From positions 6,043 through 70,042 of the forward strand of contig NIVC01003912.1 in NCBI GenBank assembly GCA_002269645.1: DNA of 64,000 nt, given 5' to 3'. The DNA is from Macrostomum lignano (lineage: Eukaryota). The notes beneath the pieces were generated by a model. That model had not been told where the DNA came from. It saw nothing but the letters and a program-made list of their open reading frames with translations, and made no database searches. The position numbers and the translations under genes are program-made. Shown one piece after another: positions 14,235 through 63,878 of the stretch; position 1 is the first letter of the stretch; every line of letters starts with the position of its first letter.

Positions 14235-17200
14235 CTTGACCAGAAGCGGTCCCATTCCACTGCTGGCAGTCCTCGGCAAAGCTCCACTGCGGACCGCTGA
14301 GGCAAACCGCGCTCGCAGCCTCTGCGCCCAGGCTGGCGAATCGATAACCTGTCGGGCAGCGCAACTCGACTCGCCTGCCGACTGCATGACGCACGGACTT
14401 CGACAGCGGATCCAGCAGAGCGCTGCCGTTTTTGGCTATTCCGTTGACGCTGGCGATGGTCAAGTTGGACAGCGGATGGCACGGAAGCTCCTGGCAGCTG
14501 GGCACGCGGTTCGATTCGCTGCCGCTGTGAGAGGAAGCATCAAGCACCTGCCAGGTGCCGTTTAGACAGCGCATCGTTGCTGCCGTGGACGAGAACTCGG
14601 CGCTAGTGTTGACCCAGCTATCACTGTGGAGGTACGCTTGGGTCCCACCAGAGCCAGGCCTGCTGCAGTTCACGGCTGCGAGAGACCCGTTGCCTACCAG
14701 GGACACGTTGGCCGCCTGGAACACTTCGGCCTCGAAAGTCACCGAGCCGTTGTGGAAAGCGTCAAGCAGAATTTGGCTGGAGCAATGCTCTGCAAAGTGC
14801 GTTTGCCAGTTTTTGCTTGTCTGCTAAGGGGGCCAGATGTGGGGATGACTTAGATCATACGATTCCATATTGACGCTTGTAAGTACATGCGAGAACACTG
14901 GAAGGGTGGGGCAGGGCGCGAGAAAAAAGGGCACGATGGTACAACAGTAGCATGTAACGCACTACCCTGGGGGAGAAACTGAGACACACAGTATCTGGAT
15001 CTGTTTATTTTGTAACCGCTCACCACGCTACCACTGCGTGCAATACAATGGTGTGTGTTTTTCTGAAGCTGTTATTTACAAAGGCATGCTATACCGAAAA
15101 ATTAATGCTTGAAAAACAGTGGATTTTCATCTGAGAGGTCACGAGCCAGAGTCATAAGAGTCATCACTAAGCAAAATATTTCCGCAGCGATTTAGGGCCG
15201 CCAGCGAGATTTTAGCGTTACTGGCTTTTTTGTTGACAATTTTAACAAGTTTAAATTCAAAACTTTATTGATCCGCCGAACCCTTGGCTACGCCACTGCT
15301 GAAAAATGTTTTCGCTCAAAAGAGGGAAGAGCAGCTTAACTGCAAGCGGACTAAACCAGAACCGCACCAAAACCAGATCTACGAAGCCAGATGATTGTAA
15401 ATCCGGACTAAGAATAATCGGCCAATGTGTTCAGTCTAAGCAAGCCATATTTATCAAGCCATGTTGCAGAAAGAACACAGCTTGCTGGTGTCTCACCGGG
15501 ACAAATGATATCCTGCCAGTTCCGGGCTAGGGAGCCGGACCAACCGGCTATGCCTGGGCCAGCTGTGTCCGTGCAGTTGAACAGCGCCGCAGAGTTTGAC
15601 TCAATCTCCAGCTGGGCCAGCAGGCTGCTTCGACACGCGTAGCCAACCAGAGTAGCCGGGGGCTGGCCGGACAGTGCGCTGGGTTCGGCCGAGCCCAGAC
15701 TGTTGGGAAAGTGCGGCGCCAGACCTCGAGCCGCGATTGCCTCAGTTTCATTTGCCAGAGGCAGACCCGGGCACAGCTGGGCCTGGCAGTTTGAGGCGAA
15801 ACTCCAGACTGAGTTGTTCAGACAGGTTGCTGTCTTTTTAGTTTCATTGATGGCTTCGAAATAGTACATCGGGTGGCACTGCAGCAACATTTCCGCGCCC
15901 GGCTCGTGGCGTGTCGCCTTATTGAGGATTTCACTTGACGTCACACTGAACAGGTCAAGGTTCGTCAAGTTCGTCAGCGGCTCGCAAGGCAGCTTGCGAC
16001 AGAGCTCGACGCTAGCATTTGCTTTTCGAGCATCTTCTATGTCCCAGCTGCCCTCTTTGCAATTGACAGTTCCAGCTGACTTGTATGACTTCCCACGAGC
16101 TAATGTGAAGTAGTTTCCCGCCCAGCACTGCACTGTGGCTTCGGCTGAGCCCTCGACATAGCCTGTACTTGTGATGAGTGAACGGAAGGTTGCGTTTCCT
16201 GGACCGACTACACTTGTTAGAGCTGATATTCGGCAGTAGTCTGAAAGAATAGAGTGTTTTCTGCCTCACCTGATGTTCCAAGATAATCTTACTGCACACA
16301 TACTCACGTGAACAGCTCAGAGTAGTGAACGATGACGAGGGGTTCACATCCTCCCAGCTACCCCTGAGGCCATCACGTCCAATCCTGCACTGAAAAGGCC
16401 TCCACGTGTTGCTGTCATTCACAACAGACAGAATCTGGCATAGGTAATGCACCTTGGAGTAGAGTGAAAACCCGGTGGCATTCCAATGCACTGGCAATAT
16501 TTCACCCTTCTGGCTGAGTTGGAAAGGTGCAGTTAGGTTCATCAACCCGGAAACTGATGCATTGAAAGGCAGATTGTCGCACGTGACTGGCTCGCAGATT
16601 GCAGTGGCGTTCCACTTCCCGGAAGTCCGGTTGCAGGCAATGGTTGTCTTGTTCGCCACCACCGGGCTTCGAATTGTGTGCCCGGGCAGGCAGCTGACGG
16701 TGACGAACATCTCCATCGGGTTGCCGATACTCGTTATTGAGGCATTTTCAACAAATATGCTTAAATTAGAACAGTTGTGCTGCGGACAGAGTTGCAATCC
16801 GTTCATGTCCGGTGCAAAGTCACTCGTCCAGTTGGCATTATTGGAATATACATTGCAATTCACTGTCCAGTTGTAACTGACGAAGCTGGGAGACATCGGA
16901 ATTCCATGCAGCAAACTGGTAGTCCAGTTGCACACCAGAGATGCATGGTTGTTTGGGTAATGAAATCGGAACCAATGTGACAGCAAATTGGTTGAGTAGG
17001 GAGAAAAAAGCACCAAGCCGTTGTCTCCAGAGATGCTGTTTCTGAGGACGGCGTTGCTGCAAGCTCCTATGAAGGTAGTAACAAATTTATTGCCTTTTAA
17101 GCTGGGGTTTAAAATTAAAGTTCAAAACATCACCAGTTCAAAAATTATCATAAAAATTTCCAAGAAATATTCAGATAGAAACTGACGTCACTAAGCAGTG

Positions 17201-20200
17201 ATAATAGTGGTAAAGTGACAAGATCAAAGAAACTGTTTAACTTACGGACGCAGAAAAATGCTCTTTTGCCTTTGCCGAGCCACGACCATTCTCCAGTCTT
17301 GGTGCATTCTTGCTCATCGGAGGCGCCAGGAATTTTAAGGTGATCTCCGTGACAAAACCACCGCAGCTGGGTCTTGTATGGAAGTACCTGGCTTGTTTCG
17401 GTTGTTGAAGCTGTAAAGTTTTGTTCGGTGACGTTAGGTAAGACTTTATAGTAGTCCACCCATGAGTAGGACTTCACCCCGGGACAGGTGACTAAGGAGC
17501 ACTCAAAGCGGATCGGAGACCAACGGTTGCCGATCTCGCAGGTGGCCTCCAAGAATGTCCCGACAATTGTTTCGTTATTCAACCTGACCGGCTTGTAGCC
17601 AATGTCGCACGCGTATCGCACAACCTGACCAACAGGGAAGGCCGAGTTATTCGGCAGCGTCAGCGGCTTAGCGGTGTCCCCGTAGAGCACCGTTGCCATG
17701 GAATTGTTCACTTGAGGTGGCGGTTCAGTGCAGGGGCTCGGCTCACAGCTGAACGGATATCCGCCAGCTAGCGTTGCTGCTTCGCAGAGACATTGCCCCT
17801 GGCTTCCGTTTGCAAGAATGTTGCACGTGCCAGACGCGACAGTAAGGCTGGAGTTCAAGGGACTTGAGTAGTTTTCTAAGCACTGATGCGTAAAATTCAA
17901 AGGCTTCTCAGAGACACCGAGACCAGTGGGCTGGATGAGAATCGCATTCGGCACCACAGGTATGCAGCAGGAGGCCTCGGAAACAGTGAAATTCGAACAG
18001 CTACAGTTCAGCCCGCTGGCGTCCCAGATGGCGTTATGGCCGCACTGCATGTAGCCAATCCTGCCAGAGTCTGAGCAGTTGAACAGCAGCTTGGATTTGA
18101 AGGGAACCAGCAGACTCTGTGGATCAGAATAGCTCTGAACAGCTACCGTTCCCTGGGGTGTATAGCTGGACATCTGCAGCGTCGGCACCGCACCATCCGG
18201 GACGCTGTCAGGGAAAGCGCAGGATTTTGGCAGGCAGATCGGAAATTCAACCGGTTGCCAAGAACCCGCGGCATTGCAACGGCGAGTGAAGTTCGTAAAA
18301 CGTTGCGCCGCGGAAGTGTACTCATAGCCAGTCTGGCAGGTATACAGGAATGTCAACTGGGAGTTCTGGAATGTAAAAAATAGTGGATTTTGGATCGTCT
18401 GTAAGTTTTTTATGTCGGCAAGGACAAGAAGATAGTTTTTTTACACTACGAGTGTACAGGGATGAAAAGCTTCAACGGGACGAAAAAATCTCAGCTAAAG
18501 TGAAATGCAATACTTGAATAGTTGCCTGTACTTTTGGAATGACTTTATTGTCGATTTTAAACAACATAAAGAACAGAAAAAGAAAATCGCAGTAGAACTC
18601 CCGGCTCATTTTAGACAAGCAATGCGGCATTTATTCGGCATTAATTTAGAGAGACTCACTGCATTAACCAGATAGCGCAAGTCTTGCGAGCTGTTTAAGG
18701 CCACCAGGCCGCGACCCAGCAAATAAGAGTCGTTGTGAGGCTGTAGGCATCTCTTTGCTGAAATTCACGACGTGGGATTAAAATATTCTTCAGCTTCTAA
18801 TATGCAACAATATTCTAATAAGTTCCGGAGAACAGTAAAATTGAGATCTCCGAGAATTGTAACAGATTTAAGAGGGCTTACCAACGCAAAATGCTACATC
18901 GCCAGCAGTGACCAGCCTCCTTGATAGCTGCACTCCGTTAACGTTGTACGCGAACACGAGGCGATAGGCCTTGGTTGCGTCACTCTTCTGCACCAGCTGG
19001 TAGTCGTCAAACCAATACTTGGGTTTTCTTAGACCTGTGTTGAACTCCAGCATGTCCTTGTAGCCAGCGGACTGTACATCGCCGCCTCCATGAACTGTCA
19101 GATAGTCGCTTTGAATTAGCAGAATCGAAACTAAGTGACCACTGTAACCCGATGGCACTTCGCTCAGCAGGGATCTGAAGTCATTACGAATGTCAATCGA
19201 TCATAATAATAGTAATAACAATAATAATAACTGCAGAAGGGTGCCGGGCACCCTGGTGCAACGCTTTTGGTGACATTGTCCCACAACCAGCGCTGATGCT
19301 CCCACAGGATGTACAGCGGCCCTGGCTTTCTAATCGTCAGGCTTTTACAGTCTCTGTGCCTTGAGGGTTGATCCTCATGGAACTGAATTGCACAGCTCCC
19401 GACAATTTTTTGCGCACAAGCCAAAAATACACGTGACCACGCACGGAATCGAACGAGGGGTCGAGGCGCGAGAGTCGAGACGCGTTTAGCATTGAGCTGA
19501 CCTCAATCCGGTATGGGGAGATTTTCGAATTTTTCTTCAAGAAATGTCATGAACCAACCTTTTTCGAAATTTGCGCGTGATTTCCCCCACTTATCATTTC
19601 TTTAAGTTCAGGCTAAAGAATAAACAAATACGAGTAATTTATAACAAGTGATGGACCATCGTTGCTGGGCTTTTCCAGGCCTGGATCCTGCATAAACTCT
19701 AGAAACATAAATAGAAGAATAAGCTGAGCAAACAATTCATTAAACCTCAATCAGACAATCTATCTTTTTTGCTAGGAGTTTTGTATGCGCAACACGCCCG
19801 ATTCCAGCATCTACGCTCGTAAAAGGGCGAATCTGAAGCTGACACTTTATTCTTTGTTCACTGTACTTACCTTTGAAGCCATTTCTATGATAACAGCATC
19901 ACAATTCACAAAAGTACTTATCCTTAAACCCATCGAGAAGTACGCTTTTAGAACAAATAGCCTCTATAGTCTCTCTAGTGTCCTCTTGCGGTTCTCAAAT
20001 TCTAACATTTGAGGTTGCCATACTGTGACGCACGACACCCCGTTTTTCAGTGGGTTCGCCCAGCAAACTCACACGAAGGTGTCCGCTAACTCGGGCGTAT
20101 CCAATTTCGGCAGCAGGCAGCTGATCAGCAGTTGATCAAGCAGAGTCTCGATAGAGATCTGACTGCGGCGAAGGCAGAGGCAGGCAGCTGGTGCGCCCGG

Positions 20201-21607: not shown

Positions 21608-21880
21608 TGTGTTGCAAGTCAACCGTATCGAACGAATGCCTGATGAAGCGTCTTATTGCCCCTTTTTATGCAAGTAGTTCGTACGGCATCGAAACGTTTA
21701 CTTAATGCCTCAGGCTTGCTTCACTGCAGAAGAAGGCTATGATTGGTTCGCAACTTATTCCCTGTAGCTTCAGTTTCATGCGGAGACAGAACTAGACGCG
21801 TAATGAATTGAGTTGTGCAAAAATTCGCTATCTCATTTGAATTGGCGCCATTTTATCTGACTAGCTACCATGAAGGGGCA

Positions 21881-22138
21881 CCAGTGCCAGGGACGCCAGT
21901 GCCAGGGACGCCAGTGCCAGGGACGCCAGTGCCAGGGACGCCAGTGCCAGGGACGCCAGTGCCAGGGACGCCAGTGCCAGGGACGCCAGTGCCAGGGACG
22001 CCAGTGCCAGGGACGCCAGTGCCAGGGACGCCAGTGCCAGGGACGCCAGTGCCAGGGACGCCAGTGCCAGGGACGCCAGTGCCAGGGACGCCAGTGCCAG
22101 GGACGCCAGTGCCAGGGACGCCAGTGCCAGGGACGCCA
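21881..22138. repeat. Perfect 15-bp tandem array CCAGTGCCAGGGACG x17
   Basis: 17 identical units at 21881-22135, about 270 bp upstream of the sushi-gene ATG. Confidence 0.98.
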
Positions 22139-22630
22139 TGTCAGAGTGCAGGAGGTGCCAGCAAAAGGAACGCCATTTACTCTGTTTGGACACCCAAAAT
22201 CTCGGGTGCTAAAGCTACGACGAGCATTCCGAAATTAATCTACCCGTCATTTTTAATGCAGCGTACCTTTAAAGTTTAGCGCAAATTCAAGTGCAATATT
22301 ATTTAGTCGCAGTTGAAAAGTACGAACTAGGCAGCTTGTCTGAGATTTTCACAAGCTGTAAAAGCAATCCGATCAGGAAATATAAGAAATACAGATGGAT
22401 TTAGTCCGGAAATGTCTTCATTGAGCGTGAAGCAACCAGATGACGCGGCATCCGTTAGTGAAGTAACTTTTTTATTAATTTTAATGCTTTTCCTTTTAAT
22501 CTGTTCAGCTTTATTGTGAGTGCGTCATCTGTTGCACTCATGGTTCGTGTAGCGATCACTGTGTACAGGTTAGATAGTTTATTGTAGTCACATTACACAC
22601 TCTGCAGCAGTGTTTTCATGCTGTTTCACC

Positions 22631-22662: not shown

Positions 22663-23804
22663 GACTTACAAATGTTGTTTGTTGGTTTTTTATTCTTTCT
22701 GTTTGAATAAAATGATAAAAGCTAGTTAACAAGCAACCGAGCGAATATAAAAATTGAATCTTGAATATCTGGCAAGCTATTTTGAGTCCAAAAGTTTATT
22801 TCTTTCATCGGGGTGAATTTAAGTCACCAGAGAAGTTCATATCTAAGAAAAAAGTTCTAAGCACTCGTAGATTCGATAAGAGATGTTAACGTCGTCTAAA
22901 GGAAACAGTTTTTCGAATACAAATAGATAAAGTCGAAGCAAGTGAGTTTGTCTAAAATCACTCAGTAATTTTTAGCATCAACACGAATATGGAAAACAGC
23001 GATTACTACATAAATAAAAGGTATTATTTGTTCGTAAAGTTTGGTTCAATAAAAGCATTGTGTCTAAAAACTAAAAGCCACTTGAAAAATTCTCCGTATC
23101 TAGCTGGCGAAAAGGCTTAAAAGATAGGGATCAAAATGCCCTCTTATTTGTGACGTGAGGGCAAGATGGACTCTTAGAGTGCATCGAGTGCATCCACCTG
23201 GGCCGAGCGCCATTAATTGAAGGTATGGAGTTCATAGTCTGGTGACCTTGATAGCTCGCCCTCTTTGTACGTGACTGACGATCCAGCTGCACTGAACCAT
23301 CCTACTAAACATTAATGTCAATATTTTTGAAATACGGAGGACTTTTAAATGGCTCAACTAGAAAAAAATACTAAAATCTACTGCGTGCGTACATATACCG
23401 ATTTGCGTATAAATCTGACAGAGTAACAAAAAATATAGTTCTACGTGTAGAAGTAGTCAGATCATTTTTGGTCTTACAGCTCTTGCTAAAACACTCACTA
23501 CACCTAGAAGGCTACACTAGCAGTAAACTCATCTAGTCTGTCCAATAAGAGTAGTTTCTTAATAGTATTTCAGGTTGCTCCATTCCCTCACTCGCTCAGC
23601 TCTCGACTCTCGACTTTGCGATGGACCCGTCTCCCTGAGCATTTCCTGTCGTAGGAAGGACACGGGTGCGCGTTAATGCAAGTAATGAAAAATACTAAAA
23701 TCAATTTCTCAGAACAAATATCGCTAAGTAATCTTTTTTACTTGTGAGCGAGTACACGTTCATTTGTGATTGAGTCGCATAGTTTTTAATATGAAGACCA
23801 AACC

Positions 23805-26800
23805 CTATAGAACAGTGTGTGCAATAAAGTGCCTACTACGTACAGCTTCGCACGCAAACAAAAAATGTAGCCCACCGAAAGAGCTCCTTACCGTTTTCCA
23901 ACGGGGTGGTGCAAACTTGACTGGAATGACACCGACCGGCCAACTTGTCTCCGTTGCTCTCGGGTCACGCACCGTATTCAAATCATTCCTTAAGTTGCTC
24001 TCATGTTCTTCTGGGACTTTAGAGTTTCGGTTGCTCCTTCGCATAAGCAGAAGGACTACTATAAAAGTCCCAATTAGGCAAAGGGCACCAACTGAAGCAC
24101 CAACAGCGATGGAAATAATGTTGGTGTTGTTGCTGCTAGTCCTTACAGTAGGCTGCATAGCTGTTTTTACGTCCAGCACCCGCAGGTACTCCCAGGAGAC
24201 CGTCAGGCTGCTGTTGCTCAGGCCAAGTAGCACGAGCTGGCGGTTGTTCATGAGCTGCACCAGCAAATAAACAGCGAAGGAAGCACTAGTGTTGGCACCA
24301 GACTGACTGTTGACGGTAAAACTGATAAGAACGCTGCCATTTGCAAACTGCATGTCGGTTAGTTGCGACTCAGCGAGCCTTAGCTGACGCGCAAGCTGAC
24401 TCGTCAGGTGGCCTTGAAGGCGGCTTTCGTCTGTAACGACGTTAGAGAATGACTCTGTGACCCTAATTTGGAGTGCCACAGCTATAGTGTCCGTCTCTGA
24501 GAGTGTCGGAGCCGTTACACGGGGTAATATAGTCGTCGTGATGCTGTTCCAAAGCGTTGCAGCTGAAGTTTGCGTCTCTGAGAGTGTCGCCGACGTACTA
24601 GTGGGTTCCTGAGTAGAAGTGATGGTACTCTGAGAAGTGCTAGACAAACTCGGCGCTTTCGAAAGTGTCGCAGATGTACTAGTGGGTTCCTGAGTAGAAG
24701 TGATGGTACTCTGAGAAGTGCTAGACAAACTCGGCGCTTTCGAAAGCGTCGCAGACGTACTAGTGGATTCCTGAGTAGAAGTGATCGTACTCTGAGAAGT
24801 GCTAGACAAACTCGGCGCTTTCGAAAGTGTCGCAGACGTACTACTGGGTGCCTGAGTAGAAGTGATGGTACTCGAAAAAGACACAGATGAGGTATGCATC
24901 TCCGAAATTGTAGTCGTTAAGCGAGATTCAAGTGTTGTTTCAAACGTCGTCCTTGCCTGGCCAATCTCACTTTCGGTGGTAGATGGAGCGATGGTTGTCT
25001 CCGGTTGGAAGCCTGGTGGTCCCTCAAAAACGCCAATAAATGAAGATATGTCATGGCACACACACGTTACGTGCCAGATGCCATCGTCGGTCTGGAATGG
25101 CGCGCGAGTCGTGCAGTTATCCGGGGTCCAGTCGGCTCCGCTCCAGCTACGGCAGATGAGGCTGATGCTACTAAGATTCACAGAGCCACTGATGTTGGTG
25201 GTGATAGTCACACCATTGCTGAGGCGTGAAACATTCTGGTTCGCACCGTCGCTCGGGTGAAATATTCCTACGTAGGCCAGAGGACTGCGTCGCGGGGGAA
25301 TCGTCGGAGAAGCCACTTTGGCCTGTGGAGTGAGCAGATCCTTGTCCAGCAGGATGGTTCCGATGCAGGCACCGTCCTGGAAGCAGTCAGTCTGGCCACA
25401 TGACCAGTTATAGTAGCGCTGCTCGAGATCGGCACCAAGTGCAACCTGTTGACGGACTGTGAAATTGGATAGACAGTCGGTGCTTCCTGAGTCACATCCC
25501 ATCTCCAGATTGGCTGAACCGACTGAGTTGAAAGACGTCTTGTACACGCGTACAACGGTCATTGTGGATGCTGCCGCCTGAGCTAGCGAGTTCGGATTTT
25601 GACTGTTGCAGAAGGCAGGAACGGTGTTAAGAATTGTAGCCTGGATATCAGCAGCTGTTGTCGAATCGAGCGTGGAGTGATAGACTCCGGATGCGATGTC
25701 GAGGACGGACTTCACTTCAGTGGCAGTTATTTTGCTTGTTGTTCCACGCTGAGATCCCGACGCGTTGCGCCTTCGCCTTCTTTTTGCGCTGTCTGGCGAA
25801 GCTGGTGAAAACGACTGAGAGTGAAACGCATCAAGGCACTTTTTAAGAGTGTTCAGTACCAAGTTAGTTATATACTGGCTGTTGGCTCTCGTTTTCCGAA
25901 ACAGTTGACAGCTTGTTGCAGCCCTGAGACAGGAAACCGATGGCACACTGAAATTATCGATAAAGTTTGAATATAATACTGCCCTTTAGTTATTTTACAC
26001 TATTGACAGGTTGGTTTTCTGTTAAAAAAGTGTATTACTATTTAGCATGACTTATATACCTTGTGTCTAAAGTCAGAAGATCCCGAATCACCAGTTCCTG
26101 CACCAGCTAATTCTTCTTGTTCTTTTCCTCGGACGACAGGCCAGTATCTGGCTCACTCAGGATCATTCCGCATAGTGCTGGACCGTCAACTACAATACAA
26201 TATATCAAATGGATACCTAGTTAATTTGAATTCGAAACTAAATAGAAATAGGAAATACGAGCTAACTTAATCGCCCTCACAGCTGTTTGAAATATTGTTC
26301 AAGTTGTTTAGTAAATCGTCGAGCTTGGCAAGCGTCAGCTGCTTCGCTTGCACCTGAATTACAGTAGTAAATGAGAACCAATCGGAGCCTGCTCCGTTAG
26401 AGTCGATGGCTGAAGCTTTGCAGATCCAGTTTCCTCCAGGTAGACGAGTGGTGAGCAGTCTAGCGGGTGTTGGTTCACTAGTTACGCTGACGCACTGGCT
26501 TGATGAATCTTGGCGACAGCACATGGCGCTGTAACTGAAGGACACGTCGGAATCGTCAGTGATATTCGGCCATATGGTGAGCGTGAAGGGTGTCTCCAGA
26601 GCGGCTCCTTGACTGGGAGTCACAGACAGTGATGCATTCACGCGGAAGTCGAACTGGGCCTGAGCGGTCCCGGAACTGGCGCTGGCGATCAAAAGCAGTC
26701 GGTAGGAGACACCGGCAGCAAAGCTGCAGCTTCGTCCTGGCTTAAGAACCAAAGTGATGAAGCAGCGTCGATTGGGTACGCATGTATCGGTCAGCGGCGG

Positions 26801-29800
26801 TCCTACTGAGCACTGCTGAAGCGACAGCGAGCCAAAGCCAGTCTCTTGAGTATCCACAGACCATTGAGTCTGAGTGATCTCACTGGAAATCACTAAAGCT
26901 GTCACCGGGACAGCAGCGTTTGGATTGATTGGTTTGTTGCTCGGCTCGGTCAAGATCCGGACTGATGGAGGCGGACGAGACAAAATCTGCACAAGCTTTG
27001 TACGACTGGACCGTCGCTGACCCCGCTGACAACTCACAGTGAGGTTCATGAAGCCTGAGGGTAGCTCGTATACACTGGGATCCGGCCAAGGCACTTGGAT
27101 ACTGTTCGATGATGTCTGAGTTCCATCCGAACCGAAGAAGCATGGTCCCAGTGTGTATGTTGCGCATGTAGATTGCCTCACCGTTGGCCCACTTGGTCAG
27201 ATAGAAGGTGCAAAATGTCGTCTCAGTCGAGTAGTCTGGATCGATGATGTACACGGATTCCTGCAGTGCATCGCTGACGCCGAGATCAGAGCGACCTCCG
27301 CGGACGAACATGAGAACCAGAGGGCGGCTGATCGTCTCCAGAAGCAAAAAGCCGCACGCCACGTTGGGCCAAGTCGGCATGGAAGCGCAGACACTCAGGT
27401 TGTAGGACTGGCCTCCTTGCAGGACTCCAGATCTCAGTCGGAAGAATTTACCTGTGATCGCCTGTTGGTCCACATTGATGGCTCTGGTGCCACCGACGAT
27501 CTTCCACTTGTACTGCAAAATTAAAATGTGGAGAATCACGCCTGATGGCAGTGTAGGTGCAAGAGCCTAAAGGTATACTATTGTATAGCAGACAGCAGGT
27601 GTACTTTATATTCGATAGTACGAGCTAAGACATTTCAGAGATATGCTCATTGAGATTTTGTTGCAAATTTTGCTTCTCTTATCATACTATGATGCATGAT
27701 TTATACAATAAGCGTTCTCAGAGTACTGTTACTTACACTCAGAGTGCCGATAGCCTTGGTATAGCAAAATGACGGTCGTACAAAAAGCACAGCGCTGTAC
27801 CAAAGATCGGGCTTCACATACTTTTGCTGTCCGAAGATACTAATGCTAAATGGCGTTTTTTCAACGAGTCGTTTAACTATGATGCTCGCCGTATTCGACT
27901 GTGTTCCGCATTCGTTCTGGGCAGAAGCCGTGATGTTGTATGACTCCCCAGGCGGAATCTGAAGAATAAAGCAAGATTTGAGACTGTAAATATTATAATT
28001 TTTTTTGAGTAATATCTTCTGACTTAAGCGCTTGAGATCACTAACATCCTTTCCGGCGTAGAAAGTGACTTCTGTGGAAAACTTTGACTGGAATGCGGCC
28101 AGCTCAGTTGCTTGACAAGCTGAGCCTGCAGCACACCGGATGTCCCAAGTGATCTGCTGCACCATCGATCCTCTGATGGTGGCATACAGGTTGAACGAGT
28201 CACAGAGTCCGACGGTGGCCACCTGGTTGGCATCTGATTGAACTCCGGCCAAAAAGATGACAGGTGGCTTCCGACCGTTTGCATTCACAACAGCGGTGCT
28301 GACACTGGAACTGGTGGCCAGGCTGATGTCGCTGCCACCCACATAAATGATATTCGAATTGATGCTGATTCGAGAGCCAGAGCAGATTGTTGCGCCACGT
28401 CCTTTCCACACGATGAGAGCGTTTGCCCTCGCGTAGCACTTTGGGCCAGCGCAAAAGTCGACGCATCAAAGATGGCCGAGCACGCCGTCTGTCGCAGCTG
28501 GATGTTTGTGTCGAACTGGAGATACAGGTGGTAGCCACTAGCGTCATCAGTTGCTGAGAGCAGCACCGGACCCTTACTCGAGCGGATCGAGAACGGCAGA
28601 GAGTTGTGCCTGGTCGGTGATTGCAAGAGGTGTAACCGATGTGTCACTTGGTGTAAATCATTGCATTCATACTTGCAGCAATAAAAACAAACCACTCACT
28701 TGAACACCGCATATGCATCGTAGCTAAGTGTTTGCAGCTTGCAGTTCATGACGCTGAGCTTCCATTGCAGCGACTGTCGGACTTCGGCCAGCGCAGAGAT
28801 ATTGCAGGTGACGCTTGTCGCGCTGTCGAATCTGGCCGGCACAGTGAGAAAGCCAGTGCGCGGGTCGCATCGGGTGTGGCGGCTAAGATCGTCGCAGTAG
28901 AGAAGGCAGACGAGATCGGGCGTGTTGACGAATCCCTGTCCGCTCACTGGCAGAGAGTAAACGGGATTTTCTAGCGTGAGTCTGCTCCCGACACTCAAGC
29001 TGGACAAGCTGGGAGCTCCAAAAACAGTCAAGGTTCCACCGGAAACGTCCTCGATGACTGTAGCACCGGAAGCGGTCAAGTATTTAACCTGTAGAGCGTA
29101 CTCGCGAGCAACGAGACCCGAGGGCACAGAAAAGCGGAACAGACCAGAAGATACATCGATGGATATTGCTTGAAGCTCCGTGTAGAGCGACTGTCAATGT
29201 GAGGGCGGAAGAAGTAGTTTGTATTTTATCAACGTAAATTACAAAGTTATCAATTGAAGCTTATAAATTTTGAGTATTGCTGGACTTGCTATCTATTTTG
29301 CTAATAATCGCCTAAATCTACATCTGTAAATACATCTGTAAGTAAACCTTTAGGCGCGTTGCCACTAAATTAGGCCATTAATCGTCACTATCAGGATAAA
29401 CGGCTTGTACTATTTTTTTCGCCGCGTTTTACATCGTCGTGTAATTTACATTTGTGCAATTTGATAGCGGTGTACGTAAAAGAGCCTTTAGTTATATTAT
29501 TGCAAAAATGGAATTGATGTCTTACCCAATCGGTCACTTTCAGCAGGCGCAGAGTGATTGAGCTGATTGTAAGGTTGATGCTGCTGCTGCTGATTGTCAC
29601 TTGCTGATAAGCAGCGTATGACCCCACGCAAGCGTTTCGGGTAATCGTGAAGTGGATCCGAGCACAGATGTCTCTCTGCGGGTCGCTGGGCAGCAGACAA
29701 CGACGGCATTTATCGTAAGTCTTTCGGGACGACAACGATGGCTCAGCGACACCGTCACAGCCTGTGATACAGGAAGTGTCGTTGCTGCAGCCGCAGGGTC

Positions 29801-32800
29801 CTACGCCGAAGTTGGCCGCTCTTCCGGTGCTTCCCTCGGTGCAGAAGCCGCACTTATTGATGCGCGCAGTGCTGTTCACTTTACCATCGCACCACACCGA
29901 TCTGATGTACTCATCAGCAGTCGCAAATCGACTGGAATTGTAGCACAGGCCAGGCATTGGCGAGACAAAAGATCCGTTGCATCGACCAGCGCAGTCCTTT
30001 CCATAACGCATGGCTTTGCCAGTTCTTCCACCAACGCAGTTGCCACAGTCGTTCCAGATCGCTGTGCCATTTGCATCACCGTTGCAGTCGATGCATGAGC
30101 GACCATTTCCACCACAGATTTTACAGACATCAGTCTGGAGACCTGACCATGGCTGATTGTCGCAGCCAACCGTCACTGGACGGACAACTGCCCATCCAGC
30201 AGCTGCACTTTTGTTGACCACGCTACTGACAACGAGTGGATTGATGTAGACTTGTTGTTGGGCGACCAGCTTCTCTGCGGCTGTAAAAGCAAGGATGGCG
30301 CGACTGCGGGACCAGGACGCCGGGACGGTTGGCCGAAATCGGATCGTAGCGTTGGCCGGGAGGAACATCGCTGTGACAGGCCCCGTACCGTTGACGCCAT
30401 TTGCTAGGAAGTCAGAGAGCTGCAGCGTGGAGGAAGATGTAGATGAGATGCTTCCCAAACACTGGATGGTTGAAAAGGCATCCGAAGTTTTTGCCGAGTC
30501 CTTAAAACGCGAGAGCATGCGATACTGCTTAAACGCAGGCTTGTCAGCGGATACATTCAGAGTCTGCCAGGACATGGAGTTCGGCAGCTGGTACTCCAGA
30601 ACACCACTTGCATCGTCGCCGAGGCCTTGTAGAACGAGAGCGCCCAACTCAAATGTATTATCGTCACAAAAGAACAGTGAAACCATGTCGCCGACCCGAA
30701 TCTGAGTGACGTAGTTTTCTCCATGCCGTTGCAGCATGAAGCCTTGCTCTCGCTGTAATTTCTGACTCACGTACTCGTTCTCCCTGTCCTTGAGAACACC
30801 AACAGAGAAGAAATCTTTATTCACAACAGGAGGCTGCTCCTTGTGCAGCACGCTGATTGTGACTTTGACTATCCCACCCATGGCTGTAAAAGGAAGGACG
30901 GATGGAACAAGGGAACCAGAGCTGGTGTAGCTGAAGCGAGGCGGCAGTCCACTCCAAGCCTGGCACATCAGAACGAAGGTCTTGGTAGCGGCATTGCGAT
31001 TTGGTTCGAATCGGATGTTGGCTTGGCTTGGACTCGGAACGAGAAAGCCTCTCATGTACTCGTTGATACCGCTTGTCGTGACTCCACTTCGGAACGTCAG
31101 GTTTCCGTAGATGTCAGACCTGGAAGTTACACAAATTACGTTTACACTATATTTATGTATATACTGAAGTATAATACTTGAACCAAAACAATTCACATGA
31201 GATATTTTTCATTCTCCTTTTATTCCATTATTTCAAGTATTAAACCGAAAAATCTATTTATGTTTCGGTTCTTGTTACATTTCTTACATTGTTCTGGCAG
31301 CAATGTGCCGCCTCTACCTTCGTAGCAGGAGTAAACTTACCACACTGGCTGCACCATGTACTTGCAGAACACGCCACCGACAGTCGAGAACTCAACCCTT
31401 GAGCGCATGTTGCAGAGACTTCGCTCACAGTGCAGATCAATTACGTTGTTAAGTCTTAGATCGCACACGCTGCTGCTCGGGAAACCGTTTGGACTCAACA
31501 CCAGCACTGTGGAGAGAGACACATCCAGCACAGAGGTGTCCATGACGCTGAGGCTGGATTTATTCAGTGTCACATTGGGAGGTAAAGCTCTCGGAGGTAG
31601 GAGCACGAAGCTTCTCATAACGCATTCCGATCCGTCCGGAAGTAGCAGCGAGTACGTGAGATTGATGAGTACATTTTGAGCGCCGTGTAAGAGAAGCTGG
31701 AAGCAACTGTCGGGTCTGATCGGCTCTGGACTTCCGCTGACGTTGATTTTGCGACCATCCAACTCCATCTCAGTACCGGATGCCGGGCTAACAAAAATTA
31801 CTTTGATGCGTGCGGCAGACGCAGCGCCAAGAAGGTGACCTGTGCGACAGACGCCGGGGTCCGGAGCATCCCTGTACAAGCCCTTGAAGCCAGAAACGAG
31901 CTGAGCAGCTGGCAAAAGCCGATGAGGGCGAGGACACAATTGACGGCAATTGGCAAAGTCCAAGCAGGCACCGAATGCGTGAGGACAGGCAGTCTAAGGA
32001 TGAGCATTTTGAATGAAGCAATCTCGTCACCGCGCATTAGCAATACAAACAATGAGCTTTTTTACCTGCTACGAATGTAACTCAAAAAATTAGTAGGCAT
32101 TCAGTAGAATGCATTCTGTTGCTTACCTCATTGGCGCCCTCGCATATCGTGAAATTTTGAGGCAGAGACGCACAGAAGCTTGACCCAGCTGTAGCATTCT
32201 CACAGATACGAGCGAAGCTCGTATTGTCGAGAAAAATAAGCTAAAGAAGCTAAAAAGCTAAAAAAAAACAGCCATTTTGATACCTACCTTGCCTTGTGCG
32301 TTGCACCGTGCACCCTGATCGACAAGAGACAGCACACAAGCAGCCTTGCAGAGTAGTTGACCGCTGGGTGGGCAGGAAACCTGTGCAAAACGACAGCAAT
32401 GGGTTTCATGAAGTTGGAACGACTCGAATAAATCATAAAGTTGCTTGTACCCACTTTGTATCGGCAATCCTTAGGCTTCTCTGTAGTAATCTGATCATTT
32501 GTAGTTTCTGGACCGATTGTTGTACGAGGATAAATTGTCGGCGCTTCGCACAAATTATCAGAAGGAATACAAGTCTTTGAAGCCAAACAGGGAACATATC
32601 CAGGATAGCAGATGGATGAATACTGAATTCGGAGAATCTCGTCGCCAAAGTAGTTTCCGTCAGTCGGAGGCGTGTCCTGCTCCGGCAGCAGTCCGTTCCA
32701 CAGTCTGCATGTAAAATTCACACTGCCTGGCTGTCTGAGTTGCACATAAAAGTATGAACTCTCAACCGATAGCAGTAGGTATCCTGAGCCAAACTTTCTG

Positions 32801-35800
32801 ACAGGAGCACTGCCATAGTAGGAGTAGGCGTGAAACGAATATTCGGTGTAGAGCGACGACGCCTCAATGTAGCAGTAGGCAGCCTTGCTCGGCGCCTCTC
32901 GACACAGCTGACGAACGTGGTCGTTGAGAGCGGATTCGGGAAACTCGGGCAAACCGAGACTGTCGCACCACGGGGCAGAGGCTGTAGACTGGTTCAATAC
33001 TGGACCTAAAATATTATTTGGGTAGACATCGTCATACATGGATCCAGTGCCGTTCTTTTCTACCACGACTGTCGGGAATCTAGCTGGTGGCGGTCGCGAC
33101 TTCGGCGGAAGCAGAAATCCGTAGGTAGGCTGACACTCGGCGACTACCTTGTTGTCCTTGTTGAAGTAGCGAACCCTCAGCTTTACCCACGATAGACTCG
33201 CATTGGAGCCGGCGTAGTTGGACATTCCCAGAGCATCTGCGCTCACGCAGCTGTTGTTATCGAGAAGCCTGTCGAGTGTAATTTCCTGTCCGATGCGGCT
33301 GTTGTCGAGCTTGTTGGATCCGATTCTCATCACTGGAGGACCCACTTGCTGCACGACGGTGAAGCGAAAATTCAGATCCGCAGGAATGAAGCAGGAGTTT
33401 GTAGGCGACACGGACGTGATGATAATCTTGTTGTTGGGACACGACCTCTTTGCCTCCACTTCATCGCACTGTGTCTGTCTTAGACACATGTGGTATCCGG
33501 TATAGCATCGGATCAGAGGATCAGTGCTGGTGCTGGTGGCATTGTCACACGGGCTGTTCATGTAATTGCAGTCGTCCCAAGACATGTGAACACTTCTGTT
33601 GTAGCAGATTCCTTGTTTTGTACACGATTTCTGAATATTGGAGAGGTGTAAGATTGAAAGGCTTTGGAGAGATCAAATCTAAAGAATCACCTTAGCATGA
33701 AATGAGTATCATTTTATTAGAATTGCTATTTTCAAAGATCTCTAGATGCTGGCAATGCCCTCAGAACTGTTAGCTTTCAATAGTTTTCGCATGGTAGTAT
33801 GTGTAAAATATTACAGATAAGATTTTTCTGCTGCAATTTTTGACACTTTAAGGAGCGAGTGCATCAAATAGCTGACATTTCTGGCTTCTTGGATCGAAAA
33901 TCGAGCAAATCATTTCAGAATTGTTTCGGCTATTAATCTAATATTCATAGCGAGGTTCGGACTATTTATTTATGCACGAACTTTTTAAAGGTCTTAAGCC
34001 TTAAACTTTCTAATTAAGCGTAAATTAGTATTGCGTTATTTACTATTGGGGGGGAATGCTTCTTATCTTTATCTATTCAACTTTCTTTTGTTGTTTTTTT
34101 GTTTTTTTCAATAAAAAGAGATTTATAGCAAAACTCCTTGTCCTGATAATTTTAATGGAATAAAATGATTTGTAAAACTGAAGACAAAATGCTTTTAAGA
34201 AAATGTGCTTTTATTTTTAAGGGTTAACATAAGTAATTTTCGTCCCTAGCTTAGTGGTTCAAATCTTAGTCGCGTAATTTTTTGATTAAAATCGTCATTC
34301 AAGTAAATATTTTGGAATACCTACGATGTCAAGGCTTGGGGGAATTGCTTCAATGCTGTGACTCTTGGAAAGAATTGCTGTGATGTCAAGGTCTTCTGAC
34401 GGAATTGCTGGTATTTCAGGGCTGACGGAGGGAATTGCTGAGATGTCAAGGATTGCTGGGGGGGAATTGCTGAGGCGTCAAGGCTGAGGGGCAATTGAAG
34501 CTACATGTAGTTTATTAAGAACCGAGGGAACCAGTAGACTGCTAGTCCTCATACACTCAGCAAAATTGAAAAGTTTCCACCCTCGCACCAGCCGTGTATA
34601 TTTAGAGTTTCAAAACTGGTTTTGTCGCCAGACTTGTGCCATAGACGATTGATGATTTCGTCAACACGCACTTGGGCCATAGACAAAAACTTGGGTAATA
34701 GACGCCAGACAGGTCGAAGAAAACAGTCACACGGAGCAGACAGCAACAGCTTACAGGAGTCTAAAATCCACGTTCGCAACCGAACGCAATGCTTCGCCAA
34801 ATGACCGACCTGGAACGAGCGCGCGCCATTGGCATGCTGGACGCTGGGATTACCTGAAGCGCTCGATTCGGCGCGAAAATCCGCCGCAAAACGTTGCCCA
34901 ACTGCGCGAATCACTGTCTACTGCATGGCAACAACTACGGCAAGACTTTCTGCGACGCCTGGTTCTGGGAATGCCCCGGAGAGTGAGCGCTCTGCTGCAC
35001 GCACGTGGCTGCTATACGCGTTACTGACCCTGTTCTGGGCAAGTTGTCACCCATGCTCGCGTACTTTGTTTCTTTGCTGTTCCTTTGCTTCGTTCGAATC
35101 CGGATTATATATTTGTCTATGGCTCAAACCACGAATATCTCCACCCACCAAAACGTTGACCCTTCGCGCGCTAGGGTGGAAACTTTTCAATGTTGCTGAG
35201 TGTATGTATCGCGTCTTATTCTCATTTTGATATTCCATTTTTTAGTCTATGGCCAAGCCATTCCTGCAGCCAAGACTGGGCATGCTCTGGCCGTGGCTAG
35301 CCTGGCCTTGCTTGCGATCCTATGCAGTCTTATTTTGAATGTCTAAAGTCTTATCTAGAGCGTCAAAAGCGATACTAAAAATGATTTCTCTAGGGGCAGC
35401 TATCATAGATCTTATATTCCCTAGATAGGCCACTTTGTATGGCGGTAATAGGGAAAGTGCGACCGCTGTTTTTCGTCACTTCTGCGAAAAAGCCGACACG
35501 GATTGCTTATAAATTTGAGTTCAGTAGCTTTGCGACATAGAAGCTATTTTTTGAGAATTTAATAGAGCTTCTCATGAATTGAAAAAAAAACTACTCAATC
35601 AAACTAAGAACTATCCATACACTGCAGAGACTGCTGACGAGATAGATTTCAGTAGTTGATTTTCTCGCTATCGCGAGTCTCAATTTTTTTTACATTAGCC
35701 TCTATAGCCACATAAGTGGCTAATGAGTGGCCCTTCTTTTGTAAATATGAATGTATACGAACGCCGCAGATGCACATAAAGATATTTTAATACACATATC

Positions 35801-38314
35801 TGTAACATAAAACAAGAAACGAACAAGCACTCACCAAGCCATTTAAAGAACACTGCTCCTCCAAAGCCATGAGACGTTCTAAACAGGTGCTCATGTTTGC
35901 ACAGCCATTAGCAGCAGGACAGTCGAACTCACCCTGTGATTAAATACAAATGCGTCATCAGTTCTAGCCGAACAAAATTGTTTCTAAATTTGCTTTGGAA
36001 AGTATTCCGAAACGATAAAGTCCAACTAGTTACCAAGGTGCAGTTCTTGCCCTCTCGACACGAGGTTCCGGCTGGAAGACAGGCTGGAGCTGACAGACAC
36101 GGGTACATGCCTGAAATACAATCAATCTCGTACTTAACTCGAAGAATCTCGTCTCCAAAGTAGTTGCCGTCAGTCAGAGACGTGTCCTGCACAGGAAGAA
36201 ATCCGTTCCACAATTTGCATGTCAGATTCACATTGCCTGGCTGACCCAACCGCAAATGCATGCGCACATTCTCAACCGATAGCAGGAGATATCCAGGGCC
36301 AAACTGTTTGGTAAGAGCGCCACCATAGTAAGAGTAGGTGTAGAACGAATAGGCGGTATATAATCTCGGTGCTTCGATATAGCAGTAGGCAGCTTTCCTC
36401 GGCGCTTCTCGGCATAGCCGACGAATCCGGTCATTGGGTCCGGGTGTAGGAAACTCGGAGCGACCGAGACTGTCGCACCACGGTGCGGATGCATTCGAAT
36501 TGTTGATAGTAGCATTCAGAATATATTCCAGATACAGATAGTCATACATAGTGGCGGTGCCGTTCTTTCGCAGTACCACTGTCGGGAAGCCAATTGATGG
36601 TACTGGCTTCGGCGGAACCAGGAATCCGTAGGTAGGCTGACACTCGGCAACCAAGTTGTTGTCCTTGTCGACGAAGCGCATCTTCAGCGTAACCCACGAA
36701 ATTGTCGCATTGTAGCCAGCGTAGCTAGACATTCCCAGTGCGTCTGCGCTCACGCAGCTGTTGTTGTCGAGTAATCTGTTGAGCTGAATCTCCTGACCAA
36801 TGCGGCTGTTGTCGAGCCGGTGGGACCCGAGTCTCATCACTGGTGGACCTACCTGCTGCACAACAGTGAAGCGAACATTCAGCGTCGCAGGCACGAAGCA
36901 GGAGTTAGTCGGCGAGACCGATGTGATTATGGTCTTGTTGTTTGGGCACGACCTCTTCGCTGACACCTGGTCGCACTGCTTCTTTTCCAGACACAAGTTG
37001 AATCCACTATAGCAGCGGCCCAGTTCGACAGGCTCGCTTGAGTCTGTAAAATTGTCGCATCTCTCACTCGCATAGTCACAAGTGGACCAAGGCAGGTAAA
37101 GAGTCCGATTGTAGCAGAATCCTTGTTTCGGACAGAAGTTCTGCGGAAAGTTTGTTTTAATGTTTTTGAGGAACGCATGAGTCACTTCTCGGGGATTAGA
37201 ATCAGACATGCGTCCTCATGCTTACCATGTTTCGTTCGGAACAGTTTTTTTCGATGGTTTGAAGTTCTTCGACGCAGATCTCTATAGTTTTGCAGAATTT
37301 CGTTGTCGGGCAGTACATTTGAGTCTAAAATTTTGCGTCCACTTTAATATTTTCACATGTTTAAAAACACTGAGGGATTGATTGTGTAAAGTAATTTATA
37401 GCTTGCGCTTAATTTTTTGTGCAGGCTCGTATTTGTTATACTGAACAGTTATGTTCAGGACTGCGGATGTTTATTTTCTTACATGATTTTACGAATCTAG
37501 CAGATTCTTGGCCTACTTGGTGAACAGAGAGACATACTCGTTCACCCCAAGTTAACTTGTAAGTGTTGACACCCGAGAGCACTTTCCCCTGTATGCAGAC
37601 TTGATGCATTAATTTTGTAAATGGCTTGTGTACATGTAACTTTTTATGATAATTTAAGACGGCATAAAAATGATTAAAATGCACGTGAACACGGCTTTTA
37701 CATGTCCATGTGTGCATGAATCATGCGATTTGTTGGCTCAACTGATAACGAACAGAGTCGACGGGTCCTCCCATTGTTAAACGCTAAACTTTTTTCTTGA
37801 GTTCTTTGCACCCCAGTGTAGGTAATGAGGTAATTCATAGAACGTGCACAAACTGACACATTTTACGGTGTAATTGAGCATTCTTTTTAAGAAATGTTTA
37901 TAATGTAACAATTCTACAGTTGCGTCGCTGGGGGTGGGGGATACAACGATGTTTCCGCGAATCCTGAGTTCCCAAAATGCCGTAGTCACAGGGCAGATGT
38001 CTGACGCCTTTTATAGTTATTTAGAAAGTTAAGAAAGTTTTTTAGCCTACCAGGTATTACTAATGATAAAGGTACTTTTTTAATGCATACGTAAAGCAAA
38101 AATTACAAAAACCCTATTCTATTTGACTATGGCTTCGACATTTTCAGTTATCTCTCCATTTCAAAATCCTAGCTACGCCACTGCAATTCTACATAAGCCA
38201 GTGAGTCAGTCAATCGCTTACTGCATCCGAACAATTTCCAATCGCCAATACGTCTTGAGGTCCGGTTAGCAGCAGCTGCAGCACCAGCCAGAGTCCCAGC
38301 ATGGCGCCTGCCAT
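23805..38314 (-). CDS. Giant PKD1/REJ-like single-pass receptor (~3,200 aa): signal peptide, duplicated Cys-rich domains, GCDG/CGG repeats, IPT-like, REJ, GAIN/GPS, mucin stalk, SEA-like, one TM; 3 ORF lesions as assembled (possible pseudogene)
   Basis: Phase-consistent exons: 38314-38222 (MAGAMLGLWLVLQLLLTG...), 37140-36034, 33630-32455, 32380-32288, 32240-32127, 31993-31341, 31119-29526, 29190-28700, 28609-28046, 27958-27737, 27512-26281, 26189-26060, 25947-23805. REJ-type motifs: IIDPD, GPCF, VTPSQGAALETPFTL, ASAIDSNGA. GPS: ICRSW...WTPDNC...CVCHDISSF. TM: IISIAVGASVGALCLIGTFIVVLLLM. Confidence 0.8.
24575..24870 (-). repeat. Coding 81-bp (27-aa) Ser/Thr mucin repeat STITSTQEPTSTSATLSKAPSLSSTSQ, ~3.5 copies
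   Basis: GAGTAGAAGT recurs at 24611, 24692, ...; the repeat is in frame within the terminal exon. Confidence 0.9.
34325..34498 (-). repeat. Short degenerate copy of satellite C in reverse orientation
   Basis: GGAATTGCTGAGATGTCAAGG is the reverse complement of CCTTGACATCTCAGCAATTCC; about 6 decayed units. Confidence 0.8.
34554..35202 (+). mobile_element. Internally deleted Tc1/mariner element (649 bp)
   Basis: ~30-bp TIRs (CACTCAGCAAAATTGAAAAGTTTCCACCCT / AGGGTGGAAACTTTTCAATGTTGCTGAGTG) with TA on both sides. The transposase N-terminus MLRQMTDLERARAIGMLDAG (from 34789) is fused out of frame to the C-terminus YLKRSIRRENPPQNVAQLRESLSTAWQQL...MPRRVSALLHARGCYTRY* (to 35027). Confidence 0.92.
37917..38183. 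mobile_element. hAT-type MITE (267 bp) in intron 1 of the REJ-like gene
   Basis: Imperfect TIR CAGTTGCGTCGCTGG / CCTAGCTACGCCACTG; 8-bp TSD CAATTCTA at 37909-37916 and 38184-38191. Confidence 0.8.
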
Positions 38315-63539: not shown

Positions 63540-63605
63540 CTGAAGTGATGAGGATGCAAATGCTGAGCAGATGTTCTCACTAATTCTGTAAAAAATATCT
63601 TGACA

Positions 63606-63878
<273 letters not shown>

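Follow-up and report, generated by a model that had tools for sequence, protein, structure and literature searches.

Introduction

In adhesion G-protein-coupled receptors (GPCRs), PKD1-like proteins and the sea urchin REJ receptors, the GAIN domain directly precedes the first membrane helix. A recent adhesion-GPCR review lists these three groups as the only carriers of the domain, and current accounts explain it through self-cleavage at the GPS motif together with a tethered agonist or with subunit association. In sea urchin, the cDNA-verified REJ and GPS proteins SpREJ1, SpREJ8 and SpREJ9 have one predicted transmembrane (TM) segment, SpREJ2 has two and SpREJ10 none (PMC1934368), while the nearest analogue among adhesion GPCRs is a one-TM isoform of Drosophila Cirl (PMC13197933). 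Here we describe a minus-strand locus of the flatworm Macrostomum lignano within a 64,000-nucleotide stretch of contig NIVC01003912.1 (assembly GCA_002269645.1, positions 6,043 to 70,042 of the forward strand; hereafter the window, numbered from its first letter). We consider it likely that this locus holds the 3' portion of a gene whose product, a type-I membrane glycoprotein of very large size, belongs to a bilaterian sub-family conserved within the PKD1/REJ superfamily. The ectodomain would run from Cys-rich and β-sandwich modules through a REJ domain to a GAIN-type domain with a catalytically dead GPS. The last strand of that domain would be followed not by a 7TM or 11TM bundle but by a stalk bearing O-glycans, then a SEA-like domain, a lone TM helix and a tail of ~80 residues.

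Like SpREJ1, SpREJ8 and SpREJ9, the window protein joins a REJ and GPS ectodomain to a single predicted TM segment and carries neither PLAT nor a channel, and in SpREJ8 and SpREJ9 (GenBank EF216328 and EF203419), as here, REJ is matched only in part and the rest of the N-terminal region is unrecognised (PMC1934368). It differs in that the sea urchin GPS lies just upstream of the TM, with cleavage assumed, whereas here ~300 residues intervene and the catalytic residues are absent; SpREJ1 is set further apart, by description, by C-type lectin and EGF modules, none of which were seen here. Like polycystin-1 and the PKD1-like proteins (PKD1, PKDREJ, PKD1L1-3 and suREJ3), it places a GAIN/GPS-type domain after a REJ domain in a glycosylated ectodomain of very large size, but it lacks the HL-T/S site, PLAT and the 11-TM, channel-like region, and its GAIN-type domain is not membrane-adjacent. 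The likeness to the GAIN domains of adhesion GPCRs, uncleaved ones included, lies in the Cys/Trp pattern, the last GPS strands and the helices that precede the β-sandwich; here, however, there is no 7TM, and because the last GAIN strand runs into a mucin stalk there is no tethered-agonist context.

The membrane-proximal half of the protein has its own counterparts. Transmembrane mucins of the MUC1 type and KIAA1549, for which furin-type processing has been described (PMC13570299), likewise possess a Ser/Thr stalk, a SEA or SEA-like domain, a single TM and a tail, and the Gly-Ser turn of the window protein is as in MUC1. Here, in contrast, the head is a REJ-GAIN unit after Cys-rich modules instead of a long repeat array, the stalk is only 172 residues long, and the candidate furin site falls in the GAIN-like helical region, outside the SEA-like domain. 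Neither the Pfam SEA model nor a PDB profile search revealed sequence homology to MUC1-type mucins or KIAA1549. A juxtamembrane α/β SEA-like fold is shared with the Notch HD, EpCAM/Trop2, dystroglycan and IA-2, the last four being treated as proteins with SEA or SEA-like juxtamembrane domains within a "proteolytic switch" class known for regulated shedding (PMC6586460), although sequence identity to these receptors is 12-16% and the N-terminal neighbour here is an unstructured stalk, not a folded domain. A coral skeletal "REJ domain-containing protein" was considered as a relative and rejected, as it is a standard multi-pass PKD1 protein with PLAT and a conserved cleavage site. In the literature on Macrostomum REJ/PKD1 and on single-pass REJ+GAIN+SEA proteins we found no description of the present architecture.

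Results

A continuous reading frame with homologues in five phyla

The minus-strand open reading frame (ORF) 25946..23805 encodes 713 residues, and its frame remains open back to 25985, the position taken as residue 1 throughout. Positions 25949-23892 form a single open exon, the last large one of a multi-exon gene whose open segments extend on the same strand to at least 37215. An earlier note on this DNA had listed an ORF, a GPS motif, a stalk, a SEA-like module, a TM and a tail, and each of these lies in its expected place on the minus strand (Table 1); the order of REJ, GPS-type domain, Ser/Thr stalk, SEA-like domain, one TM and short tail is borne out both by the reading of the exon and by the homologues.

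When 1.84 billion representative proteins were scanned exhaustively with HMMER, 16 matched. The best of these is the M. lignano UniRef entry A0A1I8FVC6 (P0001; E=2.5e-291, 97% identity), which maps exon by exon onto the window at ~99% identity in most exons. The others include proteins of the amphioxus Branchiostoma lanceolatum (2398 residues), the mussel Potamilus (2024 residues, labelled "PKD/REJ-like domain-containing"), the annelid Dimorphilus (P0004, 3417 residues), the clam Mercenaria (P0008, 3514 residues) and the bryozoan Bugula (labelled "GPS domain-containing" in UniProt), with a Logan transcript and several metagenomic fragments making up the remaining matches. The amphioxus, mussel, clam, annelid and bryozoan members have their modules in this order too, and the M. 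lignano protein is not an isolated case. Word-indexed searches returned no match to the whole exon or to a REJ+GAIN query, and with the family profile recovered P0012 alone, probably because low-complexity words filled the 8000 candidates considered.

From the end of REJ to the C-terminus these proteins follow a common plan, comprising helices with R-[RK]-[RK]-[RK]-R, a fixed Cys pattern, the motif C..W..W..C...CxC....[AS][LV]FE, a variable Ser/Thr/Pro linker, a domain of ~120 residues, one TM and a tail. The Cys-rich, β-sandwich, REJ, GAIN-like and SEA-like parts of the homologues are co-linear on the window by tblastn, with P0002, P0003, P0004 and P0008 aligning to 30686-29670 and 29175-28402, P0005 to 27037-26531 (the REJ exon), P0002 and P0003 across 25949-25020, and P0004 to 24491-24198 in the SEA-like part (E=4.6e-4). 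All homologues, from five phyla, end alike with one TM. We regard this conserved, uncharacterised bilaterian sub-family of the PKD1/REJ superfamily, with members in flatworm, annelid, mollusc, bryozoan and amphioxus, as real.

The public gene model departs from the continuous frame at a critical point. P0001 splices from ...DDGIWH (donor GTGACG) to the last stalk repeat, affecting window positions 25064-24700, and so treats the GPS strand (VTCVCHDISSF...) and most of the stalk as an intron, which counts against the architecture proposed here. The deleted strand, VTCVCHDISSFIGVFEG, nevertheless aligns with conserved residues in all homologues, and P0001 also omits the exon 29193-28699, which the homologues support. 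Even so, the C-terminus of P0001 is made up of this SEA-like domain, TM and tail, and neither PLAT nor a channel is present; its UniProt label, "ZP domain-containing protein", was not reproduced by Pfam. Because of the conservation among homologues, which is the strongest argument, we prefer the continuous frame over the annotated splice, and judge from the sequences that the public model is wrong to cut out the GPS strand and that the real protein would be the one encoded by the uninterrupted frame.

A GPS motif without its catalytic histidine, C-terminal to REJ

Pfam REJ (PF02010) is matched by the exon at about 27093-26270 with E=4.8e-10 (39.1 bits versus a cut-off of 25), over profile positions 176-432 of 452. 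The same model matches the homologues P0002, P0003 and P0005 with E=7e-54 to 1e-37, and a Pfam scan of the full annotated protein P0001 gave no family at E<=0.1. A REJ domain above the gathering threshold, followed C-terminally by a GPS/GAIN-type domain, places the protein in the PKD1/REJ superfamily.

The GPS-type motif takes the form C278-x2-W-x5-W-x3-C291 ... C308-V-C310-H-D-I-S-S-F316-I-G-V-F-E-G, with the letters C278-RSW-SGADW-TPDN-C291 at its start, and the conserved Cys/Trp pattern of the GPS (C278, W281, W287, C291, C308 and C310) aligns with adhesion-GPCR residues. When 16 family sequences were used as a profile against all PDB sequences, six of the 11 best matches were adhesion-GPCR GPS regions in register, from ADGRG1, ADGRG6, ADGRL3 and ADGRF1, aligned on Cys and Trp. 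Comparison by hhalign of the family profile with three adhesion-GPCR GPS segments gave a probability of 95% and a pairwise E=2.9e-8, values to be discounted a little for mild circularity, as the template was taken from segments found by the PDB profile search. Pfam GPS matches three of the 16 family sequences, at best with E=0.0021, and is the sole family matched by more than one of them. A PDB sequence search with the single exon alone returned just a chance asparaginase match.

An AlphaFold2 (AF2) model of the GAIN-like region, built from the 16-sequence alignment, has a predicted local distance difference test (pLDDT) score of 81 and a predicted TM-score (pTM) of 0.82. Its four long helices are followed by ~11 strands and two short helices, and the CxC ends the penultimate strand, after which come a five-residue turn and the last strand. 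Helices first, then strands with the CxC ending the penultimate one, is the known GAIN pattern. Several results pull the other way: Pfam calls neither GPS nor GAIN in the window protein itself, single PDB matches to adhesion GPCRs reach just E=0.05-1.3, and Foldseek of the GAIN-region model against PDB placed no GAIN structure among the top 50, its best match being an axonemal protein (TM-score 0.37) and the rest antibody Fabs. With profile and AF2 evidence in favour and the Foldseek null against, we consider GPS homology supported by the sequence comparisons and the full GAIN fold of the region probable, the latter on the basis of the profile similarity of the GPS part and the predicted secondary structure, for which Foldseek gave no confirmation.

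Asp-Ile-(Ser)-Ser stands in place of the catalytic His-Leu-Thr/Ser, with the Asp at the position of the His, and hhalign pairs this D with H, the following I with L and the S with T. His is absent at -2 from every one of nine family sequences, and it is therefore reasonable to predict that GPS autoproteolysis has been lost across the whole family, which extends to the homologues the loss that the earlier note had predicted from the Asp substitution. The GAIN-like domain is moreover not membrane-adjacent, F316 being separated from the TM at residue 623 by ~300 residues of stalk and SEA-like domain.

A second candidate cleavage site lies in the helical half of this region, where a polybasic RRRRR fits the furin-type R-X-K/R-R form. 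The corresponding column reads RRRKR, RRRKR, RKKR, RRRRRR and RKKR in P0002, P0003, P0004, P0005 and P0008, respectively, and the site is kept in six of the seven members covering that region. The AF2 model has a pLDDT of ~50 at model residues 50-70, around the polybasic loop. This disordered loop may take over from GPS cleavage.

A mucin-like stalk, a SEA-like domain and a single TM helix

Ser and Thr make up 52% of the stalk as against 21% of the rest of the exon. Within the stalk, an in-frame tandem repeat of 81 bp x 3.6 (27 residues x 3.6) occupies 24873-24583, with 94% matches and no indels by Tandem Repeats Finder, and the homologues have Ser/Thr/Pro-rich linkers of variable length at this position. 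The Ser/Thr-rich stalk described in the earlier note is therefore present, its length of ~200 residues having been put slightly high. By sequence and fold the protein has the features of a transmembrane mucin, namely a Ser/Thr repeat stalk (short for a mucin) with predicted glycosylation, a SEA-like fold and one TM.

The AF2 model of the juxtamembrane domain (pLDDT 83.5, pTM 0.74) has a β-α-β-β-α-β topology, and its best Foldseek matches in PDB are to the EpCAM/Trop2 C-domain (E=6e-4 to 1e-3, TMq 0.64-0.70, root-mean-square deviation 2.6-3.4 Å), with a dystrophin-glycoprotein-complex chain and the IA-2/phogrin ectodomains among the further top matches. At the level of sequence, Pfam SEA (PF01390) was not matched at E<=10 in any of nine family members, the window protein included, which speaks against a canonical assignment, and a PDB profile search with the SEA alignment gave merely weak, spurious matches to a viral envelope glycoprotein. 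The designation "SEA-like" is supported by the predicted fold and by its structural matches to the EpCAM/Trop2/IA-2 class. Of the two fold assignments made in the earlier note, the SEA-like one is upheld by Foldseek, whereas the GAIN one found no structural match there and has hhalign on its side for the GPS part.

Residues G550-S551 (24338-24333) sit exactly on the β2/β3 turn of the model, in NGSVLISF. The form G-S-[IV]-[IVL]-[VI]-x-F occurs in the window protein, P0003, P0004, P0008 and the Bugula paralogues P0007/P0034, and GSIIV or GSIVV stands at the β2/β3 turn in four other lineages; the amphioxus member lacks the Gly-Ser motif, a point against the preferred reading. Gly-Ser at the β2/β3 turn has the position and form of the MUC1-type SEA self-cleavage motif. 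Self-cleavage of the SEA-like domain is accordingly worded here as possible, on the strength of this motif.

The TM segment reaches a 19-residue Kyte-Doolittle mean of up to 2.58 and is the only such segment in the exon, and every full-length homologue has its TM at the aligned position. No known domain can be recognised in the short tail. Over 23.5 kb downstream, the minus strand holds no multi-TM coding cluster, hydrophobic segments clustering just in a microsatellite, and Pfam found no PLAT or PKD_channel match in the downstream ORFs. With one TM, the protein has neither the PLAT and multi-pass region of 11-TM polycystin-1-type proteins nor the 7TM of adhesion GPCRs. The absence of a multi-pass unit, which the earlier note had asserted, is sustained by this lack of a multi-TM cluster downstream, by a new gene at about 21652 and by the one-TM homologues.

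Exon layout of the gene

The exon that carries the stalk, SEA-like domain and TM probably does not end at the stop at 23805. If the GTAAGG donor at 23891, after ...PPRWKT, is joined to the CAG acceptor at 23646 with its pyrimidine-rich tract, the frame continues into a terminal exon that encodes EMLRETGPSQSRESRAERVREWSNLKYY and a stop, and for this reason the stop at 23805 is probably intronic read-through, with the topology unaffected.

Upstream, the exons of the gene span 27704..37215 on the minus strand, as judged from open segments, P0001 mapping and tblastn of homologues. The two paralogous modules are 55-61% identical to each other, each with a small Cys-rich exon before it, and match no Pfam family. 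The exon 31208-29394 consists of repeated C-x2-C-G-G / D-C-x-G-D-type units; no Pfam model matched it, and its sequence is kept in the homologues from amphioxus, mussel and annelid (tblastn E down to 8e-31). A search inside the window for paralogues of the exons under study gave none.

Two points weaken this layout. The exon structure is read from genomic sequence and homologues, and three phase-consistent ways of joining the REJ exon to the last exon were modelled by hand, none of them convincing: one uses the P0001 junction to ...SPDSAK, and two others pass through a 47-nt micro-exon at about 26108-26062. In an alternative model the first ~50 residues of the last exon (25949 to about 25800) may be intronic.

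Table 1. The gene and its encoded modules in the order of translation, with positions in the window
Feature	Positions	Strand	Residues, extent or basis
Two paralogous Cys-containing modules of ~430 residues	37215-35932 and 33672-32287	minus	same gene, 5' part
Upstream exon	31993-31340	minus	same gene
Cys-rich exon, CxxCGG-type repeats	31208-29394	minus	same gene
Upstream exons	29193-28699 and 28465-27704	minus	open segments, P0001 mapping
REJ domain, C-terminal ~55% of the Pfam model	26285..27049	minus	exon about 27093-26270
GAIN-like region (probable fold)	25020..25949	minus	residues 13-322; four long helices, then ~11 strands and two short helices
Polybasic RRRRR, candidate furin-type site (R-X-K/R-R)	25767..25781	minus	low-confidence loop between helices
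GPS-type motif	25020..25154, core 25064-25038	minus	sequence, hhalign
Ser/Thr-rich mucin-like stalk	24504..25019	minus	residues 323-494, 172 residues
SEA-like juxtamembrane domain	24144..24503	minus	residues 495-614, ~120 residues, includes DMQFANGSVLISFTV
Single TM helix IISIAVGASVGALCLIGTFIVVLLLM	24042..24119	minus	residues 623-648, then RRSNR
Cytoplasmic tail, first part (RRSNRNSK...FAPPRWKT)	23892..24041	minus	sequence; also in P0001
Probable last intron GTAAGG...CAG	23646..23891	minus	sequence; junction used by the P0001 model
Probable terminal coding exon EMLRETGPSQSRESRAERVREWSNLKYY and stop	23559..23645	minus	translation; tblastn of P0001 residues 2400-2438

Other features of the window

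A perfect 15-bp microsatellite of ~20 copies (21815-22279) occupies part of the interval before the next gene; several of its frames, from both strands, are open (PGTPV / ASLAL / QCQGR). The separate downstream gene occupies 21652-14000 on the minus strand; its ORF 21652-21320 has the signal-peptide-like start MLFIVAKCLSSLALAVVFTASF, and Sushi/CCP-repeat ORFs are found at 17148-18356 (E=3e-9).

Exons of a Ufd2/UBE4-type ubiquitin chain elongation factor lie on the plus strand at 47105-51764, with a Ufd2P_core match (E=1.6e-60) and the start of a U-box. A single open exon of 1235 residues at 58693-62400 (minus) is rich in Ser, Thr, Glu and Pro, with repeats of ~27-30 residues and a hydrophobic segment at its end, and just upstream of it an ORF at 63324-63938 contains an ADAM Cys-rich domain; the two may belong to one mucin-bearing ADAM-like gene. 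In the region 3497-8000, the N-terminus of an ORF resembles the mannose-6-phosphate receptor (E=4.5e-8), and for ~4 kb after this ORF the two strands are extremely asymmetric (GC skew -0.57 to -0.48), pointing to a long C-rich repeat. Positions 44001-46000 form an AT-rich trough, with a GC content of 0.28 against about 0.45-0.5 elsewhere.

Discussion

The earlier note had proposed that a REJ-GPS ectodomain uncoupled from any channel might represent an undescribed receptor class. That claim is overstated, as REJ and GPS with one TM and no channel are already known in sea urchin (SpREJ1, SpREJ8 and SpREJ9; PMC1934368), and the M. lignano protein and its relatives already stand in public databases as uncharacterised entries. 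What does appear to be undescribed is the insertion of a stalk and SEA-like domain between GAIN and the membrane, the family-wide dead GPS and the conserved convertase site.

The sea urchin proteins also give rise to the best-surviving alternative, namely that the window gene is the flatworm orthologue of one-TM SpREJ8 or SpREJ9, so that its class has been described and only the annotation of stalk and SEA is new. SpREJ8 and SpREJ9, at 2965-3274 residues, have a partial REJ, a GPS upstream of a single TM and no known domains upstream (Gunaratne et al. 2007, PMC1934368); their sizes resemble those of the annelid and clam members, and in the window protein, too, the REJ match is confined to the C-terminal part of the model. 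Echinoderm proteins, however, are absent from the 16 matches that the exhaustive scan gave, and the published account, with which the comparison is by description only, puts the GPS "upstream of TM1" and mentions no SEA-like domain or stalk between the two (PMC1934368). By analogy SpREJ8 and SpREJ9 may be orthologous to the window family, and we hold the alternative to be quite plausible while giving it less than an even chance.

Our preferred reading, that of a REJ-GAIN glycoprotein on a single-pass anchor, is carried by the order of the modules, the conservation of that order across phyla, the missing catalytic residues of the GPS, the SEA-like fold and the single TM; furin cleavage, SEA cleavage, O-glycosylation and any function are steps that we infer beyond these, and they temper it. 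An uncleaved GAIN domain could serve as a structural cap for the REJ module and not as a tethered-agonist shield. A proprotein convertase would cut the polybasic loop in the helical half of GAIN, leaving two pieces that remain non-covalently associated, a functional echo of GPS cleavage. The SEA-like domain, for its part, might self-cleave like a mucin SEA or house a protease site as in Notch, EpCAM and dystroglycan. Given an uncleaved GAIN, a convertase site and SEA-like cleavage as proposed, the protein would therefore act as transmembrane mucins or adhesion receptors do; its large head could be released by force or proteolysis, and any signalling would proceed through shedding or partner proteins and not through an intrinsic channel or GPCR. 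In its complete form, a three-piece force-releasable complex in which REJ-GAIN is detached from channel or GPCR, a convertase cuts the GAIN-A loop, and a mucin stalk is joined to a self-cleaving SEA domain, this mechanism is a tentative one.

Set against that mechanism is a simpler possibility, in which the SEA-like domain is a passive spacer without self-cleavage, the polybasic site goes unused, and the protein is a single uncleaved adhesion or glycocalyx molecule. Its best structural matches, EpCAM, Trop2 and IA-2, are SEA-like and not canonical mucin SEA domains, the Pfam SEA model goes unmatched, the Gly-Ser of the window protein lies in an N-G-S glycosylation sequon, and the amphioxus member does without Gly-Ser. 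Yet G-S-[IV]-[IVL]-[VI]-x-F is kept at the β2/β3 turn in five lineages, in the position and form of mucin SEA, and six lineages retain the polybasic motif, which lies in an exposed loop. We rate the passive spacer as possible but on the doubtful side.

That the window copy is a decaying paralogue of a functional gene strikes us as improbable. M. lignano has many near-identical duplicated loci, 27566-26883 and 27196-26270 are in different frames, an in-frame TAG interrupts the best micro-exon candidate for linking the REJ exon to the last one, and tblastn identity to P0001 is just 70-94% over some segments, all of which would fit a pseudogene. A plausible 88-nt GTGAGG...AG intron, however, explains the frame change, and the low-identity stretches are those where the P0001 model skips or shifts sequence, not substitutions; more than 2000 codons are open over ~12 exons, and the conserved Cys, Trp and motifs are intact. 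Still less credible is a canonical polycystin-1-like gene with PLAT and 11-TM exons elsewhere and the stalk/SEA/TM frame intronic or alternative: P0001 does assign the GPS strand, with most of the stalk, to an intron, and tandem repeats can remain open by chance, but P0001 itself ends in the SEA-like domain, TM and tail without PLAT or channel, the strand that it removes is conserved in all homologues, the one-TM ending recurs in homologues of five phyla, and the downstream minus strand offers no PLAT, PKD_channel or multi-TM cluster before another gene appears from about 21652.

For M. lignano, the immediate consequence of the preferred REJ-GAIN single-pass reading is the correction of a public gene model that lacks the GPS strand. 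For the family, the consequence is more general, in that its members keep the REJ-GAIN pair, lose the catalytic residues and set the pair ~300 residues from a single-pass anchor, while the polybasic loop and the Gly-Ser motif of the SEA-like domain suggest that one proteolytic logic has been replaced by another. If this is true, the REJ-GAIN unit would have a self-standing role, be it in binding, structure or force bearing, and GAIN function would be independent both of tethered-agonist shielding and of a juxtamembrane position. Such a role would also bear on the reading of mutations in the polycystin-1 ectodomain, and the family would provide a simple single-pass system for the mechanics of REJ-GAIN.

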